DNA of 64,000 bases from Selaginella moellendorffii (lineage: Eukaryota; Plantae; Lycopodiophyta), in contig NW_003314323.1 in NCBI RefSeq assembly GCF_000143415.4, forward strand, positions 872,499-936,498, written 5' to 3'. The position numbers were made by a program, and so were the translations under genes. The notes beneath the pieces are model-generated. The model had not been told where the DNA came from. It saw nothing but the letters and a program-made list of their open reading frames with translations, and did not search any database. Of the stretch, positions 42,534 to 53,282 are shown one piece after another (within the stretch, counting starts at the first letter, position 1; each line of letters begins with the position of its first letter).

Positions 42534-44110
42534 ATGATTAAGCTCTTGCTACTTGCACTTGCGGTCCTTGTAGCCGCATCGGCCTGCGAATTTGAGTATG
42601 AGGACTTCATCCTCGGTGAGCCTGTTGAATATGTCAAGAGTGATGCTGGAGAGATCCGAGCTTTGATGGGCTCTCACGAGGACCTGTCACTCAAGGAGCG
42701 TGATGTAGCTCTCGGCTTCATCACCATGGAACCTCGGGCGTTGCTGCTACCACATTACATGGACGCAAGCCTTGTTTTCTATGTCCAGAAAGGTACTAAA
42801 AAATGGTTCTCTTTAAGTTCGCTGGATCGTGATGTCACAAACTGATCAGGCGATGCTATGATTGGATCGATTCGTGGGGAGTCGACTGTCAAGAAGGATT
42901 TGAAACGAGGGGACGTTTATACTGTTCCTGCTGGAGCTGTTTTTTACGTGCTCAATGCGAACGAAGATGAGAAGCTCGAGCTGATCGGTATCTTCGACAC
43001 CTCCAGGGGGTCACGCAGTGGTAAACTTCAGGTAAGAGCGTAATCTTTGGTTGCTTGTCACAAGACTAAGTCATATATTTGTTTTGATGATTTGAAGTCG
43101 TTCTTCGTCGGCGGTGGACTCCATCCTAAACTTGCATTGGCTGGTTTCCGTTCGGGCCTTCTAGCAGCAGCTTTCAAGGTACTTCGTTTTGTACGGGGAT
43201 CTGCTCTCATCGGCTTGTCTGTGCAGGTATCGGAGGAGGAGATCAAGAACGTGTTTGGCTCCCAGGATGGAGGACCAATCATCCCCACGAGCGTTGGGAT
43301 GTTTGCACGATTAAAAGGCCAAGAGAACTATCTGGAAAGCGTGGTTTCCAACAAGAAGCACAAGAAGGACGAGGACAAGAAACACAAGGACGACAAGAAG
43401 CACAAGAAGGATGAGGACGACAAGAAACACAAGGACGATGACAAGAAGCACAAGGAGGACGAGGACAAGGAGAAGCGCAAAGACAAGATCTTCAACCTCT
43501 TTGAGAAGCGAGCATTCGAGAACCAACACGGCTGGATTGCCTCCACTCTCGGCGAAGACGTGCAAGCACTGGCATCAGGCCGGATTGGAGTTTCCATCGT
43601 CAAGTTGCAAGCGGTAAGTTCAAAGTCTCATAAAACTTGCTTGGTTCTCTAACACATCTCTGGCAGGGTAGCTTTTTGGCTCCGCACTGGAATAAGCAAG
43701 GAGCTGAGTTTGGAGTGGTGACAAATGGCACTGGAAGCCTCCAAGTCGCTCTTCCCAACGGCACGAATGGCGTCGATGCCAAGCTCAATGTAGGCACCAT
43801 CTTCCACGTACCGCAGTTTTTCCCGGCTTCCCAGATCGCTGCCACTCACGAGTGCTTGGAGTTCGTCAGCTTCACTGTCGCGGCGGATTCTCGCTCGGAG
43901 CTCACCGAGGGGATACAGTTTCTCGCAGGTAGGAAGGACGCTTTTGGTTAGAAGTTGTGATCGTGGATGGTTTTTGCAGGGAGAGGCTCCGTGCTCGAGA
44001 AGTTGGAGCTCGGCATTCTCGCGTTGTCGTTCAATCTGCCTGATCATCTGGTTTCAAGCTTCTTGGCTTCTCAGGACGATGCAGCAATCCTTGCCAACGA
44101 CGTCCAGTAA
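42534..44110 (+). CDS. Vicilin-like bicupin storage protein, multi-exon
   Basis: Signal peptide MIKLLLLALAVLVAASA; cupin 1 (GFITMEPRALLLPHYMDA, GDVYTVPAG); K/H/D linker; cupin 2 (GSFLAPHWN, IFHVPQFFPASQIA, QFLAG). Confidence 0.92.
43353..43488 (+). repeat. Coding tandem repeat (KKHKxD1-3) in the cupin linker
   Basis: aagaagcacaag(aag)gac... units translate to KKHKKDEDKKHKDDKKHKKDEDDKKHKDDDKKHKEDED. Confidence 0.9.
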
Positions 44111-44326
44111 TCTCGGGGTGGACATGGTGTTCCGCTAGATAGAATAAAGAAAGATGGGACACAAGATATTCGGGCCAAAACTATGAGAGCTTTCTCGAAT
44201 TTCAGCGAAAATTATCGTGTTGAATCCTCTACAGGTTATTGCTGGAGGAATCACCAAGCCAGAAGAAACAAAAGAGAGGGAGACTTAACAAGCGTTTCCA
44301 ATTATTTGGTGGTGGATCGACCACTC

Positions 44327-44631
44327 TCACTCGAATCCTCCGGTTCCCCGAAACTCTGTGGAAATGCCAGTGGTATGAGAAGCTACATTCTTCTTTCTGT
44401 GGCGAGAGGGAGGGATTTACCTGGCTTTTGGGCGACGCCGTCGACCCACTTGGTGATCTTGTAGTGGACTTGCTCCCTGGCGGCAGTCTGGGTCTTGTAG
44501 GGCTCCTTGAGGCACTTGCGGAGGTGCGTGGCGCAGGCGTTTGCGTAGGACATGTAGGTCATGCCCGCGACGCGCCAGTAGGCCGTGGCCGCCGGCCCTG
44601 TTGCCGCTGCTGCTGCTGCTGGCGACGCCAT
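44327..44631 (-). CDS. Mitochondrial ATP synthase epsilon subunit (2 exons)
   Basis: AYWRVAGMTYMSYANACATHLRKCLKEPYK...KWVDGVAQKP; intron about 44356-44420; last exon EFRGTGGFE* is inferred. Confidence 0.93.
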
Positions 44632-44729
44632 AGCCAAGAGCCCTAATGCTACTCTAGCTTTCTTAACATAATTTATTTTGGTTGTAGGTAAACCTTTTAA
44701 ATATAAAAGCCAGAGCCTGATTATTACAA

Positions 44730-44801
44730 ATCAGAGTGGCGCAGCGGAAGCGTGGTGGGCCCATAACCCACAGGTCGGAGGATCGAAACCTCCCTCTGAT
44801 A
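44730..44801 (+). tRNA. Initiator tRNA-Met (CAT), T-stem variant
   Basis: ATCAGAGTGGCGCAGCGGAAGCGTGGTGGGCCCATAACCCACAGGTCGGAGGATCGAAACCTCCCTCTGATA. A1-U72 pair and AUCGAAA T-loop. Upstream TATAAAA (44702) and CAA; T-run terminator at 44808-44812. Confidence 0.97.
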
Positions 44802-45205
44802 GCAAAGTTTTTTGAATTGTTTTATTTCGAAATACAAAGCTTTAACTTTCATGTTTACAAATTCAATTGCAGATCGTCTGGATCGTCGCCATTTATCGTA
44901 CGACGAGCTGCCACCCTTCCGCCATAGCCGTGACCTTGTCCCGAGCACATACTTGAGGAGGGAAGCCCTCAGAGGAAGAGATCCACTGAGGAGCCCAAGT
45001 CGAAGAGCCAGCTCCTTCCAGGCACAAGACCGTGACCTTGTGGTCTTTAGGTGGCGAGATTTGAAAGAAATTTCCTAAAAGATTGTCTTCTTGTTGCCGC
45101 TAAACGTTTGCTGCTGAAGGGAAGTTGTTTGATGCGCTATTAAAGAGGGCGACTTTGTTGTTCTTGTTGTTCTTAACTGGATTGCTGCTAGTGTTGGCCA
45201 AGGAA

Positions 45206-45545
45206 ACCATGCCATAGCCTTGCACAGCCGCCGTTGAGAAAATGGATTGATGCCCGCTGCATTTCTCGCAATATGGTAATCGCTTGGGCATTTTAAACAG
45301 AACAGGATTCCACATACCACTCCGAAGAGACCAGACAAGTATATCCATCATTTAGGAACAAGTCGCCTTCATACATATGCCACCATGTTTGGGCTTAAGC
45401 TTCACTGCGAAGCTATAGCTTTAGATCTTTGGCCCAGGAGAGGGCTCACACACAAAATGCGATGAGCGAAATTACTTAAGAATTATCAGAGGGAAATACC
45501 GGCAGCTTGATGATCTCGCCCTGACCATAGCTCCCATCTTCCAGA
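45206..45545 (-). pseudogene. Inverted, internally deleted chimeric relic of the sialidase-like 5' region fused to the DMI1 3' region
   Basis: Reverse complement of 45284-45315 matches 50646-50677 (31/32); 45272-45285 matches 48627-48640 (14/14); 45247-45268 matches 48699-48720 (21/22); about 45480-45545 matches about 49990-50066 with gaps. Confidence 0.85.
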
Positions 45546-45861
45546 TGCTCTCTAATCCGTGGAGTTCCTGGTCCCAGCAACGACGGAGCCGCATTTCTGG
45601 TGAAACGGCGCATCACTAGAACTCTCCTCTCCTTGTTTCCTCCTATGCCCCATTGTCTTCCTAAATTCTATCCTCTGCTACGAGCACACAAAAAAAGAAT
45701 TTTTCCTCCAACAATGCAAGGCAGTTGTGCTAGCAGCACTAGATAACTGACTGGGTCAAAACCATCCCTCTAACGAAATCTTGATTAAGCCCCATTTTAA
45801 TATTTGGCGGGAATAGTAGTATGAACCCTACACCCTAGGGTTCGATGAGCATGCGCGCACG

Positions 45862-48800
45862 ATGCGAGGCGGCAGCTGCCAGGAGCAAGGTTTGAGCATA
45901 TATTTCTGTCCTCTGTTTCTATAATCTCGGTGCATTTGCTTCTCAGGTGGGCGATCTCTGAGAAGATCGTCCTCGATTCCATCCAATCTCAAGGATGCCA
46001 CGAGCCCTGTTTTCTCAGGGCCGCCGCCGATCGTCAGGCGATTGAAGAGCGCTAGTGAGTCTCGGCGCTTGGCTGTCGAGAAATTCAGGAGTGAGGATTC
46101 CAGGCCAGATGATAGCTGGATCATTGTGGATAAGGAGGAGGCGGAGCCTGGATCAAAAGCGAGGGATGATCGGGATAACCTCCGGGTGAAAAAATCAAAG
46201 CCGATGAATTCTTTGGAGGAGTCTCATGGTACTCCATCGTCATCTAAAGGTCATGTCTCTCGAGTCGCGGATGGAGTTTCTAACTGGAACGCTACACAGT
46301 TCGTGAGACTTTTCATCTATGCGTCGCTCTCTCTTTTGGTAAAGCTCTAAACAATGTTTCTATCCTTTGCATCCATTCGTTTGTTTCCAGCTTATACTGT
46401 CCTACTTCGCGCTGATTGTGTACACCCTGGTTTTGCGAGCAGAGCGACAAAACGTCAAGGTAAAAAGAGTTCTTTGTTTGGTATTCTATCACGATTTTAT
46501 TTTAACATTTGCTATCCTATGGCAGGAATCTCTTGTCAAACTCCAAGCACAAATCGAGACATGCACAACGAGAATGAGCACTCTGGAAACAAATCTTGAC
46601 CAGAAACCGGCTAGGAGGCTTGCACTTTTTGTGACTGTCTTCTTTCTTGCTATGCCTTTTCTAATTCTGAGAGTTATGGATGACATACACAGCAAGCTAA
46701 CGAGAAACATCACAGACGAAGAAGTCCCTCCGAGCAAGAGGTTAGCGTATCTCGTGGACTTGATATTTTCGAACGCAATTGCAAAGCCGATTGCTCTACT
46801 TCTCGCAACAATGCTTCTAATAGCTTTCGGTGGGAATGCATTATATTCTGTTACTGACGATACTTTTGAAGATGCGCTATGGCGAACTTGGAGTTATGTA
46901 GCGGATTCTGGCAACCACGCTGACAGCGTCGGCTTGGGTTCCAGAATCGTATCAGTTTGTATCAGCCTTGGCGGGCTGCTTATTTTTGCTCTCATGCTCG
47001 GTCTTATTTCGGATGCCATTTCAGAGAAAGTAGACTCGCTTCGAAAGGGAAAGAGCGACGTCATTGAGAGCAACCACACTTTGATCCTTGGATGGAGCGA
47101 CAAACTTGTAAGTTATCTCTATTTTGTTAGCATTAAGGCTTCAAACCGCAGTGGCTGTTGTAGAACTCGCTGCTAAACCAGCTTGCAATTGCCAACCAAA
47201 GTCTAGGTGGTGGGGTGATCGTCATTCTTTCTGAAAGAGATAAGGAGGAAATGGAGGCTGACATTGGGAAGATGGAATTTGATTTTCTCGGAACTTATGT
47301 CATCTGTAGAAGTGGAAGTCCTCTCATCATGGCCGACCTTAAGAAGGTACGCGGAAATGTCTTCACGAATTTTTTAATTTTTTTCTTAAAACGACTTTCA
47401 GGTTTCAGTGTCTAAGGCTCGTGCCATTATAGTACTTGCAGAACCTGGGAACGCTGATCAGGTTTTTCCTACTTTCCATGCTCTGATCGTTTTGTAACTT
47501 ACTGAGTTTTCCTACTTACAGAGCGATGCTCGGGCCTTGAGAGTGGTTTTAAGTTTGACAGCAGTGAAAGAAGGATTGAAAGGTCACGTCGTGGTCGAAC
47601 TCAGTGACATAGATAACGAACCACTGGTGAAACTTGTTGGAGGTGATCTGGTAGAAACGGTCGTGGCACATGATGTTATTGGTCGACTTATGATTCAATG
47701 CGCTCGTCAACCGGGGCTTGCACAGGTTTTTTCTTGTTTCTCTACGTAATCTCTGTTAACAGCCCTTCTTCCAGATATGGGAGGATATACTTGGATTTGA
47801 TAACGCGGAATTCTATCTTAAACGATGGCCACAGCTTGTTGGGATGACATTTGAAGACGTTCTTGTGTCATTCCCTGATGCGATACCTTGCGGGGTTAAG
47901 GTAGCAGCTAACGCAGGCAAAATTGCCTTGAATCCAGATGATGACTACATCATATGCGAGGATGATGAAATTCTAGTGATTGCAGAAGATGACGACAGTT
48001 ACTTTCCAAGTTCGCTACCGAAGGTACTGTTGTTTCACTGTCTCACTGCAACTTACTTGGCTTGTTTTGGCCAGGTGAAGAAAGCTGCACTACCGAAGAT
48101 TGTAATTCCTCGAAAATATCCCGAGAAAATGTTGTTTTGTGGTTGGCGGCGAGATATAGATGACATGATTGTTGTAGGTCCTCTTCTCAGTTTTTCTTTG
48201 CCGTGTGGAACTTATCCCAGCTTTCAGGTTTTAGAGGCTTCTCTTGCACAAGGATCGGAGCTATGGATGTTCAGCGGCGTGCCAGAGCATGAAAGAGAAA
48301 AGAAGCTTATCGACGGTGGCCTTGATCCCAAGCGGCTTGAGAACGTCCATCTGGTGCATCGTGAGGGAAACCCTGTTATCCGAAGACACCTCGAAAGCTT
48401 GCCGCTGGAAACATTTGACTCGGTAAAGTTTCGTTTCATGTAATAAAAATCCATAACTTTCTTTCCTTCTTGTAGATATTGATTCTGGCAGATGAGGAGC
48501 TTGAAGATTCGGTAATCCACGCAGACTCGCGCTCTTTAGCTACTCTACTACTGATACGTGACATCCAGGTACGTCGAGTTTTTAACCCCCCGGACGCCAA
48601 CTTAATCTCGTGTCATTCTCCAGTCAAAGCGATTACCATACCGAGATCTAAGAGCTGTCCAAGTCCGGCAGGCTGGATCCTTGCAAACCTCCTGGATACG
48701 AGAAATGCAGCAGGCATCAAACCAGTCAATAATCATCAGCGAGATCCTCGACTCGAGAACAAAACACCTGGTCTCGGTGTCCAAGATCACCGACTGCGTC

Positions 48801-49161
48801 CTCTCCAACGAGCTCGTGAGCATGGCTCTGGCAATGGTAGCGGAAGACAAGCAAATCAACCGCGTTCTGGAGGAGCTATTCGCTGAAGAAGTAAGCCCAT
48901 GGCTCGCAAGCTTTCAAATTGATACACAAGTTTTACTGACAGGGGAATGAGATCTACATTCGGTCGGGCGAGCTCTACTTATACGACCAGGAAGTGCTGA
49001 GCTTCTTTGAGCTGATGATGCGCGCGAGAAAGCGGCAAGAGATATTGATCGGATATCAAGCAGCTTGTGCCGATCGTCCTTCCATCAATCCCGCCAAGAA
49101 ACACGCTGCAAGGAAATGGTCTACTAGCGATGTTTTCATTGTTCTTGCGTACAATGAGTGA
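45862..49161 (+). CDS. DMI1: CASTOR/POLLUX/DMI1 nuclear-envelope cation channel, multi-exon
   Basis: TM segments, pore filter YVADSGNHAD, EKVDSLRKGKS.V.ESNHTLILGWSDKL, RCK domains (CRSGSPL, VAHDVIGRLMIQCARQPGLAQ, SRSLATLLLIRDIQ, NELVSMALAMVAED). Start inferred. Confidence 0.96.
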
Positions 49162-49369
49162 GGAAGGAGGAATAGTGTATATCAACATTGATTTTACATT
49201 CTTTGGACACACGTAAAAAGACGCTCTTAGATTCGCTCTAAACAAAATCGAGCTGTCTCTTCTTTTATTCCGAATTTCGGATATCATCACTCTCTTCTTC
49301 TTCCTCGTCTTCGCAGAGGCAGCAACGGCATCTCCAGCAGCTCCATCGGCGTCCTCCTCCTTGATTTGG

Positions 49370-49460
49370 CGAGGATCGAGAATGGAGCGCCAGTGATGAC
49401 TCCCAGGGGTTGCTTGTTTTTGGATTGATTTTCTTTGTCCGCAGATTGCAAAGCCGAGAG
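49370..49460 (+). pseudogene. Deleted fragment paralogous to the orphan gene at 58304-59702
   Basis: gatcgagaatggagcgccagtgatgactcccaggggttgcttg resembles 59230-59272, joined directly to ttggattgattttctttgtccgcagattgca, which resembles the intron/exon junction at 59435-59465. Confidence 0.8.
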
Positions 49461-49996
49461 TGTCACTAAGGTAATATATATCTTATTTTGTACGTATCCC
49501 AAAGTTCTTGCACCGTTTCTGAGCAGCACTGTGTCGGATGTTTGTTTCAGACATTGTAATGTTTTTCGACTATAAGTCTTTCTATATTTTAGGTATCGAG
49601 CTCTTCTTCCAGATAGAAGAGACATCCTTCGTTAGCCAGATGCAAACTGGCATCACGAATTGTAGAAATTTTTTCCAAGAAATACGTGCTATCGGGGAGA
49701 CGAACACTTCAATTGAAAGAGCGTAAAAAGAATCTCCCACCCACCTGAGAAACAAATCCTCAAACCCTAGGGAGTAGGGTTTATACTACCAAATATCAAA
49801 ACACAGAGGAAGAGATTCCAGGGTCGATTCTCACAAGGAAAGGCCCAAGAGATATATTTGTTTCTCTGGCGATGGAGGCTCTGGCGCTGATGGCGATGGC
49901 GGAGCGTCCTGGCAGGTCGGTCCCATTTCTATCTCCTCTTTCCTCTCGCCGAATGTCGCTGTCTCGCAGTTCTACATCCGATTTGTTACCTGGAAG

Positions 49997-51667
49997 ATGG
50001 GAGCGATCGTCAGGGCGAGGCGCTGCGTAGATCATCGAGCCGCCGGTATTTCCCTCTGATAATTCCAGGATAGTCTAACTCCGGGTGTTCTTCTCTTCTA
50101 GCGTCGGCAGCGCTGGCCGGGATTGTGGTCTTGTACATCAATTTCGCGCATTCCACGCATTTTGTGCCGAGCTTGGAGCGTGCCCTCTCCTCGGCGGAAG
50201 ATCTAAAGCTGTGGCTTCGCAGTGAGAAGTACGATTTCTTTAGCTCTTTTCTATGGTTCCTGGAAGTTTTCTTTTTCTTTTTTTTGATCCAGCACGAAAA
50301 TGAGTAGATTGCTGTCTGGGAGAATCGGCATTGTCAAGGAGGAGTTTTTATTCGAGAAAGGTCTTGCACCGTTCAACAGCTGCCATGCATCGACGATTGT
50401 CGAGGTAAGTTATACGTCCATTCTCGGAATTAAATGAGGGAACTTCACAGCTTGAGCCCGAGCATTTTATGGTGGCATACTTTGGAGGAACGTATGAAGG
50501 CGACAGTGATGTCGTGATCTGGACACAGCGCTTCAAGGTATAGTTTTGTTTCTCCTTGTTCATGATGTATACATTTTTTTCTTTGGTATTTCAGCATGGT
50601 GTCTGGTCTGATCCTCAAGTAGCTGATTCCGAGTTGGGTGTCCCCATGTGGAATCCCGTTCTGTTTAAAATGCCCAAAGGCGAAGTGTTGCTGTTTTACA
50701 AAATTGGTCCAGAAGTTCAGAAGTACGCATCATCTCTTTGAACCGCTTTAGCTGATTTCCGTTCGTGGTGTTTTGCAGATGGAGCGGGTTTATGAAGAGA
50801 TCATTTGACAACGGAGTAACCTGGTCTGCGAGGCAAGCTCTTCCTCCTGGAATTCTTGGTCCTATAAAGAACAAGGTAAAACAGGATCTCTGTGTTTTCA
50901 ATCTTCAACATGGTTTGCTTTTCTTCTTCGTTTACAGCCTTTACTCCTGAGAGATGGAAGACTTCTTTGTGGATCGTCTGTTGAAAGCTGGGATGCATGG
51001 GGTGCGTGGATGGAGGTAAGCACTTTCTTCTGCTTGTTCTGTCTTTGCGATTGCAAACACAGTACTGCAGGTTACCGAAGATTCAGGCTATACGTGGAGA
51101 AAGCATGGTCCGATTTACGTCCAACATACTCCAATGGGTGTCATTCAACCTGTTCCATATCTCACAGACAATGGCACAATCCGAGTGCTTCTAAGAGCAA
51201 CACAGGAGATTGGGAAAATATGCATGGCCTCATCGTCCGATGGAGGACGCTCGTGGACCTACGCTACTCCGACTCAGCTCCCAAATCCAAACTGCGGTAA
51301 ACTCGTACGTTTGTTTCTTCACGCCAGTCTCACAAAATCAACGCAGGATTCGATGGCGTTAAGCTGCGCGATGGCACGCTTCTGCTTGTTTACAACACCG
51401 ACTCTCGTGGTATACTCAAGGTGGGGGTCTCTGGCGACGACGGAGACACTTGGACAGAGGAGATTACTCTGGAAGAGCAGGAAGGCGGCGAATTCTCGTA
51501 CGCCGCAGTGATCCAGTCTTTCACCGGTCTCGTTCACGTCACATACACTTATAATCGAGTCCAGATAAAGGTACAACGCTGCTTTCTAGTCATTGGTTTC
51601 TATGAACATTTTCTTCGTACAGCACGTAGTTTTGAGAATCGAGACATTGAGGAAGACAAGAGATTGA
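49997..51667 (+). CDS. BNR/Asp-box repeat (sialidase/neuraminidase-fold) protein, multi-exon
   Basis: Spliced N-terminal TM anchor ([14 protein letters not shown]), [27 protein letters not shown]; Asp boxes [32 protein letters not shown]; EFSYAAVIQ...[13 protein letters not shown]. Confidence 0.9.
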
Positions 51668-52175
51668 GTAAGTTGACGTCCATTTCAGCCATCGTGCCCC
51701 ACTCACATATAGGACACCAACCATTTTCTTTTGGTGGACTCGTGACACTCCAAGATCTTTCCCAAGTCTACAGGTTCGTGTTTCTTATAACTAGATCGTC
51801 TATTCTTTATTTTTCTTTCTCAGGCCAAATGATTCCATCAGTGTTGGTGATTGTTTAATTTATACACATCTAACATGAATTAAGACATAATTAAGAAGAC
51901 AATTCATATAAAATGGTACGAAAGATAGCTTGTTGACAAAATTTTAAAAAATCCCGCGGTTTTTCAATTCAAAAAAACAAAAAAGTAGGAAAGGTGTAAC
52001 ATATATACAAGCGCGGATGGATGGAATCAAAACAAAAAGCTCTTGTTTTGAGCCCCCCTGCCTCGTCTCTTGCTCCAAATCCATAGTCCTTGCTATCACG
52101 AGCAAGTGTAGTAGTAGTAGCGAATGGATCCAATCCATCCAACAGTGATCCAAAACTTTCTCGCGGGATTCATCA

Positions 52176-53282
52176 TCAATCCGAGGCGTTTGGGCCGTGG
52201 CAAGCGCTGAGAACCGGATCCCAGATCCACTGCACCAGGAACCTCCGCCCATTCACCCCATGCATGTTATAATTCACGCCGCTCCGGGCGTCGGTCAGCA
52301 CGGCACCCGCGTAGCCGCCGCCGGCACCGGTTCCGTACATGCCCTCGCACAGGTCCGCGATCTCGGTGGGCGCCGTCGGATCCTCCCCGGCGTACCACGC
52401 GTTGATCAACGGGTTGGATGAGATCTCCGCCAGCTCGTGCGCGACCACGCTCACCATGCCGTCCACCGCGGGGCTGGCGTTGGGCGGCCTCATGGGCGTG
52501 GTGTGCGTCATGTAGGACGGCACCGCGAACGGGTAGGCGCACACCTCGGGGCACTGCTTCTCGGAGTGGCCCACCCACGCGTACGGAAGCGTGTAGCCGA
52601 CGATGGACGGGAAGGAGAAGTAGTGGAAGCCGCATACCGCGCGGCAGAAGTCCTGGACCACGACGTCGCCGGCGGTAAGGATGAGGTATATTCCGCGGCG
52701 CGGGTTGACGGGCAGCGTACCGTTGTTCTCGGCCAGCGCACCCTTGAGGACCTCCTGCATGGTGAGCCGCGTGAGGCTGTGGCCGTGGGAGTAGTCGACG
52801 TTGTGCTCGCCCGCCACCACCAGCTGGCTGGTGATGTTCTGGAGCGTTTGATCCGTGTAGAGGCGGACGGTGCTCCACCAGCGCTGGACGGATGGCTGCG
52901 GCACCGCGGCGGATTGCGGGGATGAGACCGAGGCCAGGAAGTCGCGGATGATGGATTTGTCCGAGGATTTCCAGCGGCCATACCAGACGATGTAGATGTG
53001 CATTTGCTGGGAGAGCACTGGCCCCATATGGTAGCGCATCTTGACGTACTCGGAGGAGCCCTCGAACGCCTTGGAAGCCCCAAATATGCCGCCGCCGCCG
53101 CCTTGGATCTTGGAGATTATCGCTTCCTTGTCCTTCCAGTAGGGGCGGAAGGGCTTGTATCGCGCCGCTGGAAGATCCAATGGAGCTGCATTGGATAGAG
53201 AAGAGGGGGATGAGGAGAGCAGCGATCTTGCCGCTGCTTGAGAGAGGAGAAGAGCGTAGAGGATGAGCATTGCCAGCGCCAT
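52176..53282 (-). CDS. EXORDIUM-like / Phosphate-induced-1 secreted protein
   Basis: Signal peptide, MRYHMGPVL, FCRAVCGFH, QCPEVCAYPFAVP, AHELAEISSNPLINAWY, EIADLCEGMYG, FLVQWIWDP; intronless. Confidence 0.96.
   Translation of the reverse strand: MALAMLILYALLLSQAAARSLLSSSPSSLSNAAPLDLPAARYKPFRPYWKDKEAIISKIQGGGGGIFGASKAFEGSSEYVKMRYHMGPVLSQQMHIYIVWYGRWKSSDKSIIRDFLASVSSPQSAAVPQPSVQRWWSTVRLYTDQTLQNITSQLVVAGEHNVDYSHGHSLTRLTMQEVLKGALAENNGTLPVNPRRGIYLILTAGDVVVQDFCRAVCGFHYFSFPSIVGYTLPYAWVGHSEKQCPEVCAYPFAVPSYMTHTTPMRPPNASPAVDGMVSVVAHELAEISSNPLINAWYAGEDPTAPTEIADLCEGMYGTGAGGGYAGAVLTDARSGVNYNMHGVNGRRFLVQWIWDPVLSACHGPNASD

Follow-up and report, generated by a model that had tools for sequence, protein, structure and literature searches.

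The stretch of DNA analyzed here, hereafter the window, comprises 64,000 nucleotides (64 kb) of the Selaginella moellendorffii genome, and all positions given below are window positions. The haplotype of the window corresponds to scaffold GL377627.1 (GCA_000143415.2); positions 42176-63282 are the exact reverse complement of the scaffold piece that we fetched. Gene coordinates were taken from the gene table of the scaffold record and converted to window positions. Protein identities were assigned by searching the exons singly, with no spliced model joined. The part of the window that concerns us holds the following genes:

42534-44110, plus strand, cupin gene (gene table)
44327-44631, minus strand, mitochondrial ATP synthase epsilon gene (gene table)
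44730-44801, plus strand, tRNA-Met (CAT) (ARAGORN; Rfam tRNA, 55.6 bits)
45862-49161, plus strand, DMI1/POLLUX-type channel, 879 aa (gene table, Castor_Poll_mid; Pfam on exon ORF)
CDS 49997-51667, plus strand, BNR/sialidase-like gene, 390 aa (gene table, BNR_2; Pfam BNR_2 on exon ORFs)
52176-53282, minus strand, EXORDIUM-like gene, single-exon ORF (gene table)

Pfam matches on the exon ORFs were consistent with the names in the gene table. The DMI1 exon at 48624-48890 found its best match in PDB entry 7vm8, 'Ion channel DMI1' (E = 9.5e-37), ahead of CASTOR (2.9e-28). Because this exon scores DMI1 above CASTOR, the gene names proposed in an earlier reading of the letters alone (the sequence-only reading) are acceptable. 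In the cupin gene, the ORF at 43047-43652 encodes a long repeat rich in lysine, aspartate and histidine (KKHKDDEDKK-like) that resembles the charged low-complexity insert of a vicilin-type protein. The EXORDIUM-like gene has a paralogue on GL377744.1 that is 67% identical; a PPR gene follows both copies, and their other neighbors differ.

Upstream of DMI1 lies a relic of the two genes to its right. The minus strand of 45545-45284 is collinear with 49990-50677 of the sialidase-like gene, as seen by repeat finding, by BLASTN with a word size of 7, which recovered the inverted collinear blocks, and by gap-tolerant alignment. The blocks, all of them inverted with respect to their donors, are as follows:

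Relic 45544-45517, donor 49990-50017, inverted
Relic 45516-45480, donor 50029-50065, inverted
Relic 45473-45451, donor 50140-50165, inverted
Relic 45451-45402, donor 50176-50225, inverted
Relic 45401-45363, donor 50449-50503, inverted
Relic 45351-45328, donor 50562-50609, inverted
Relic 45315-45284, donor 50646-50677, inverted

Together they make up one part of a segment that we call D':

45284-45545, minus strand, segment D', sialidase part: copy from the sialidase-like ATG through exon 5 (z = 31.7, four-way alignment)

The blocks are 10-50 nt long and 81-100% identical to their donors, and they are separated by clean deletions of 11 to about 223 nt, through which a donor of about 690 bp was reduced to a relic of about 260 bp. 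The chained score of this part was 151, compared with 44 ± 3.4 for dinucleotide shuffles, which gives the z value listed above, and with 41 for the same-strand control. The counterpart of the annotated sialidase-like ATG is at 45537-45535. Exons 1, 2, 4 and 5 are partly kept, one coding exon (exon 3, 50301-50406) is missing, and intron bases survive from intron 1 (50044-50065) and from a later intron (about 50555-50575). A shortened minus-strand copy of 49990-50677 that includes intron-derived bases had been described in the sequence-only reading, and our alignments bear out that description. The retained intron bases indicate that the relic is a copy of DNA and not of spliced RNA, and they rule out a processed retrocopy. 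A tblastx comparison of 44000-46000 with 46000-52200 detected nothing of the further downstream sialidase exons to the left of 45283. The right end of the relic, position 45545, and the annotated ATG of DMI1 downstream of it (45862) are 317 bp apart, in agreement with the earlier estimate of about 320 bp. We also considered transposon capture of the Pack-MULE or Helitron type; it was rejected, as 44700-46100 contains no terminal inverted repeats or target duplication. No further copies of the relic were found elsewhere in the 64-kb window.

To the left of the sialidase-derived sequence, the relic continues with a shorter piece of DMI1, followed by a spacer:

45243-45285, minus strand, segment B: the beginning of a DMI1 exon in inverted copy, donor 48627-48724, minus a 58-nt internal deletion
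48627-48724, plus strand, segment B', detectable part: functional DMI1 exon sequence, the donor of B
44802-45242, no strand, spacer: unique sequence, a candidate for the decayed rest of the DMI1 3' duplicate (B) or for the original flank (A)

Segment B begins 3 nt within the DMI1 exon that starts at 48624. Relic positions 45285-45272 match 48627-48640 at 14 of 14 positions and 45268-45243 match 48699-48724 at 24 of 26; the chained alignment of this part had a z value of 10.5, and its score was reached by none of 200 shuffles. The jump back to DMI1 that had been proposed for the minus strand is therefore real from 48627 to 48724. The proposal had continued it to about 48838, and this extension fell away, since homology past 48724 (relic 45242-45206) was not significant by alignment. 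The spacer at 44802-45242 had no homology to 48725-49738 (chained z = 1.2), no blastn or tblastx match within the 64-kb window and no Pfam match on its ORFs. The left flank, segment A, contains the tRNA-Met gene, which has the ATP synthase epsilon gene on one side and the relic on the other and stands about 440 bp away from what we argue below is probably a breakpoint scar.

At the junction between the two parts, sialidase position 50677 is joined to DMI1 position 48627. Both donors carry CAAAG at this point, as the sequence-only reading had noted for this permuted join, and the relic reads ..CCCAAGCG... Here the relic is one A short of the donors, such that the shared bases amount to 2 nt (AA, 45284-45285) unless a base was lost later. 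Sialidase exon 5 is joined to the DMI1 exon in frame (..MPK followed by RLPY..), and the frame is lost five codons on. An ORF of 83 aa on the minus strand (45100-45351) crosses the junction and has no Pfam match. At its birth, the join of B to D' could have specified a chimeric protein, sialidase at the N-terminus and DMI1 at the C-terminus.

Beyond 45545 the inverted homology resumes: we found that it runs on to about 45952 and reaches the promoter of the sialidase-like gene at 49739-49803, which is new here. It consists of three blocks:

45793-45806, donor 49790-49803, 11 of 12 identical
45816-45848, donor 49757-49789, 29 of 33 identical, telobox-like and palindromic
45934-45952, donor 49739-49757, 17 of 18 identical

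These blocks and the sequence around them define three further segments:

45793-45952, minus strand, segment D', promoter part: inverted copy of 49739-49803, upstream of the sialidase-like gene
45546-45792, no strand, segment D', middle: positional equivalent of 49804-49989
49739-50677, plus strand, segment D: sialidase-like promoter and first five exons, the partner of D'

The three promoter blocks are collinear, with a joint z value of 9.2 and a divergence of about 7-9%. The middle of D' (45546-45792) could not be aligned with 49804-49989 (z = 0.1, chained alignment). The extent given for the relic in the sequence-only reading, 45206-45545, thus corresponds to a real region but fell short on the right, where 45793-45848 and 45934-45952 are homologous as well. 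Between the last two promoter blocks, the DMI1 side holds 84 nt (45849-45933) that are absent from the sialidase side. This stretch consists of annotated DMI1 exon 1 (45862-45889, 28 nt) and most of the 57-nt intron 1 (45890-45946); the 28-nt first coding exon is annotation-based and is identical in both haplotypes. The block at 45934-45952 comprises the acceptor of DMI1 intron 1 and the first bases of exon 2, so that D' ends about 5 nt into exon 2. On the sialidase side, the left edge of D retains about 19 nt of the same sequence, the intron-1 acceptor and the start of exon 2, on the minus strand. A short direct repeat, more complete in the second haplotype, bounds the stretch missing from D, as expected from a deletion in the sialidase-side copy. 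The promoter-block homologies indicate that D carried, on opposite strands, the sialidase promoter with its 5' exons and the 5' end of DMI1.

Directly upstream of both DMI1 and the sialidase-like gene (45793-45848 and 49757-49803) is a telobox-like near-palindrome with two opposed AAACCCTA-type motifs. It is the best-preserved non-coding portion of the duplication and probably represents the core of a former shared promoter.

The S. moellendorffii assembly contains both haplotypes, and we reached the second through the allelic EXORDIUM-like protein (90% cluster), which led to GL377571.1. Gene order, relic, junction and nearly all deletions are the same there as in the window. An assembly error or chimera, which the sequence-only reading had named as a way in which its account could fail, is ruled out by the presence of the relic on both haplotypes. 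Fixed differences between relic and donor numbered 20 of 197 columns in the sialidase part, 5 of 42 in the DMI1 part and about 4-6 of 58-65 in the promoter blocks. The sialidase and DMI1 parts are equally diverged, indicating that they are of the same age and arose in a single event, and the divergence of the promoter blocks is similar. By comparison, polymorphism between the haplotypes in relic/donor columns was 4-5 of 197 (about 2%), against about 10-12% fixed differences between relic and donor, which places the event at an age several-fold greater than the haplotype split. The haplotypes also differ in length. The second lacks about 150 bp of 45613-45782 through two deletions that flank a retained stretch of about 20 nt, has an additional 10 nt following 45848 on the DMI1 side and, in the donor, lacks 16 nt at 49742-49757; inside the relic, indels of 9 nt and 6 nt distinguish the two haplotypes. 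These local indels show the deletion-prone decay by which the copy shrank. Intergenic DNA at this locus turns over chiefly through deletions.

The homologies themselves, how they are ordered and oriented, the equal divergence of the parts and the occurrence of the relic on both haplotypes are observations. In our judgment they are rather probably the product of an old inversion, about 4.5 kb in length, in which the entire DMI1 gene was turned around and both breakpoints were duplicated; the relic would be one of the two breakpoint scars. Two different breakpoint segments occur in two copies, inverted relative to each other: D and D' (z = 31.7 and 9.2) and B and B' (z = 10.5). The present order would read A - B - D' - C' - B' - D - E, in which B is 45243-45285, D' runs from 45284 to about 45952 as the inverted copy of 49739-50677, C' is 45953-48626 and B' extends from 48627 onward; C' and B' would make up the body of DMI1, and D and E the sialidase-like gene. 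In the sequence, B meets D' at 45284/45285, D' runs directly into DMI1 exon 2 (C'), and B' lies downstream in DMI1 and is followed by D. Before the inversion, DMI1 and the sialidase-like gene would have stood head-to-head, DMI1 being on the minus strand, and the two would have shared a telobox-containing promoter with their start codons about 150-330 bp apart. We infer this head-to-head order from the scar alone, and the ancestral orientation of DMI1 and the mechanism of the breaks are inferred likewise. Duplication of D in the course of the inversion would have left a promoter copy with each gene. Subsequently, deletions would have removed about 60% of the useless sialidase exons from the D' copy, in which DMI1 exon 1 and intron 1 were kept; in the D copy, the sialidase exons would have been kept and DMI1 exon 1 lost.

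The only new joins in such an inversion would be that of B to D' and that of B' to D (about 49738/49739), and the seemingly permuted junction 50677/48627 would be the former, the left end-joining junction. For this junction one would expect the far end of D to be joined to the near end of B', as is observed. The ancestral adjacencies B-C and C-D would be preserved as C'-B' and D'-C', such that both genes stay intact, and since D is duplicated each gene would keep a copy of the former shared promoter. Both genes are intact at present, and decay by substitutions and deletions is confined to the redundant copies. The inversion model explains in one step why the relic is inverted, why its order is rotated, why it lies directly against DMI1 and why exon 1 is found inside the copy. 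DMI1 exon 1 and intron 1 within D', and D' lying against exon 2, are predicted by an inversion with duplication and not by an insertion.

Two observations weigh against the model: the middle of D' (45546-45792) does not align with its counterpart at 49804-49989, and the DMI1-derived piece is short. B' can be traced only to 48724, short of the D boundary at 49738, and because B is detectable for only 98 donor bases, either large deletions or a filler variant is required. The short piece could be the remnant of a break staggered by about 1.1 kb (48627-49738); against such a 1.1-kb duplicate of B, DMI1 exons in 48725-49161 left no trace in 44802-45242 (z = 1.2). Alternatively, it could be a short filler copied from nearby DNA in the course of end joining, in which case the left break would have been unstaggered. 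Plant end joining is known to make short templated fillers.

Replication template switching of the FoSTeS/MMBIR type, acting on the same head-to-head ancestor, would yield the same product, of the class known in human genomes as dupINVdup. It is a mechanistic variant of the inversion that differs in enzymology and is not another history. The short microhomology at the junction would suit it, as would the short DMI1 piece, which would then perhaps never have been 1.1 kb long, and human paired-duplication inversions have reportedly been ascribed to replication-based mechanisms. However, the sequence does not separate template switching from break-and-fill-in, the second junction (about 49738/49739) being too decayed, and we regard this variant as unlikely.

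The sequence-only reading had offered, as its second choice, a collapsed tandem duplication that was afterwards inverted. On our coordinates the duplication would comprise 48627-50677, and an inversion or transposition would have followed, with the tandem copy collapsing. The involvement of an inversion is the part of this suggestion that stood, and a tandem duplication would leave the same end-to-start signature with microhomology. It would, however, require a duplication, a relocation or inversion and a loss, three events at the minimum; the copy would still have to be placed where it supplies the DMI1 5' end, and 49161-49739 and the sequence after 50677 carry no trace of a second copy. This history is decidedly improbable.

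The first choice of the sequence-only reading was a circle of about 2 kb that was closed by microhomology, reopened and inserted in inverted orientation upstream of DMI1. On our coordinates it would span 48627-50677, with closure at CAAAG and reopening near 49739. The end-to-start junction with microhomology on which it was founded is real, and the two parts of the relic are of the same age, as they would be in a circle. But a tandem duplication and a dupINVdup also give this signature, and the one-step inversion model produces the very same junction. Part of the evidence against a circle lies to the right of the region in which the relic was first recognized. Both DMI1 exon 1 and intron 1 lie within the copy, whose end is about 5 nt into exon 2. 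As the copy includes the DMI1 5' end, it cannot be a simple insertion upstream of a complete DMI1, and no empty target can be drawn; the points at which the circle opened and inserted would need to have rebuilt the DMI1 5' end by chance. In addition, the ends of the copy map to 48724 and 49739, and the 1 kb between them (48725-49738) is unrepresented in the copy, where it is undetectable and was possibly deleted later. Finally, with the relic on both haplotypes there is no empty-site allele. A reinserted circle is therefore unneeded and, in our view, very unlikely. We give as little credence to the corollary that the relic is the inverted footprint of such a circle and that the promoter-block homology at 45793-45952 is an older, unrelated similarity. 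If the circle reading were true, re-integration would have shuffled gene fragments in a plant, upstream of a symbiosis-pathway channel gene.

That the relic is a functional inverted-repeat locus, kept as a source of antisense RNA or siRNA directed at either DMI1 or its sialidase-like neighbor, as the sequence-only reading had envisaged, is extremely improbable: the relic is indeed an inverted partial copy of two expressed neighbors and is retained on both haplotypes, but it has only two exact matches of at least 20 nt (24 nt at 45480-45503, mostly intronic, and 20 nt at 45284-45303), its arms are 4.4-5.3 kb apart with the whole of DMI1 between them, it folds no better than shuffled sequence (z = +1.4 and +2.0) and matches no Rfam family, its decay takes the form of random deletions and about 10% substitutions, its haplotype polymorphism (5 of 197) is like that of its surroundings, and the copied promoter would drive a minus-strand transcript in sense orientation to both genes. 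The lack of a hairpin together with the scarcity of matches of at least 20 nt makes a small-RNA role weak. Most likely, the relic has no function of its own, apart from belonging to the DNA upstream of DMI1.

We also searched for outgroups. With the EXORDIUM-like gene as anchor, the locus of its paralogue on GL377744.1 and two Diphasiastrum loci were non-syntenic and contained neither DMI1 nor the BNR gene. A search of Logan with DMI1 exon 4 returned best contigs with 73% and 65% amino-acid identity; these extended only 0.5 and 1.5 kb upstream, and in that sequence they had no sialidase-like sequence or tRNA, which is too weak to count against the inversion. A search with sialidase exon 5 led to one 1.2-kb metagenome fragment.

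An inversion with duplicated breakpoints would have turned a head-to-head gene pair into a tandem pair without damage to either gene and, in the same step, duplicated their shared promoter. It makes the ancestral orientation of DMI1 predictable from the scar alone. For the biology of DMI1 the consequence is modest: its upstream region would be a decayed copy of its neighbor's promoter and 5' exons, and the sequence gives no sign of regulation by RNA. More generally, such an inversion leaves, at its B-D' junction, a nearby inverted duplicate that appears circularly permuted, and the geometry should be tested before circles are invoked.

The mechanism of rearrangement is already known, and the locus described here would be a gene-scale lycophyte example of it. 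Inverted duplications were found at the breakpoints of 17 of 29 Drosophila inversions and explained by a staggered-break model (Ranz et al. 2007, PLoS Biol, PMC1885836); those duplicates are about 88% identical and decay by substitutions and small deletions (PMC1885836). The same class is called dupINVdup in human genomes (Collins et al. 2017, PMC5338099), and on chromosome 16 of Chlamydomonas CC-503 it has flanks of 2.3 and 3.7 kb in which genes are partly duplicated (PMC9940879). The class is best documented in these three settings, flies, humans and Chlamydomonas; the lycophyte case would be a clean, gene-scale one.

Comparison with other systems helps to place the locus. Like the inverted duplications that give rise to plant hairpin RNAs and MIRNA genes, the relic is an inverted copy of expressed gene sequence. 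Unlike those founders, its arms are non-adjacent, are not near-perfect and could not fold as one transcript. With a re-inserted circle it shares an end-to-start microhomology junction and an inverted, rotated order. However, insertion of a circle would be expected to leave a contiguous target and the whole of the circle, whereas here the copy forms the DMI1 5' end and is without about 1 kb; moreover, unlike in a circle insertion, the copy abuts a segment whose other end meets the donor.

With dupINVdup in human and Chlamydomonas genomes the locus has in common the order A-B-D'-C'-B'-D-E, the partial duplication of the flanking genes and the possible fusion at a junction. Those cases are young, with junctions defined to the base. 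The event described here is old: its copies have diverged by about 10%, it is fixed in both haplotypes, and the second junction can no longer be read sharply. The Drosophila inversions (Ranz et al. 2007) range in size from hundreds of kb to Mb; here, only about 4.5 kb with a single gene would have been flipped, in a lycophyte host. Relative to so short a segment the duplicated flanks are long, at about 0.95 kb and up to 1.1 kb. B is detectable for only 98 donor bases. As in Drosophila, the inverted pairs consist of non-repetitive genic sequence, with the two members of a pair at either end of the flipped segment; the partial gene copies that became redundant have decayed, through substitutions and small deletions, to about 88-90% identity; and the polarity of the rearrangement would be readable without an outgroup.
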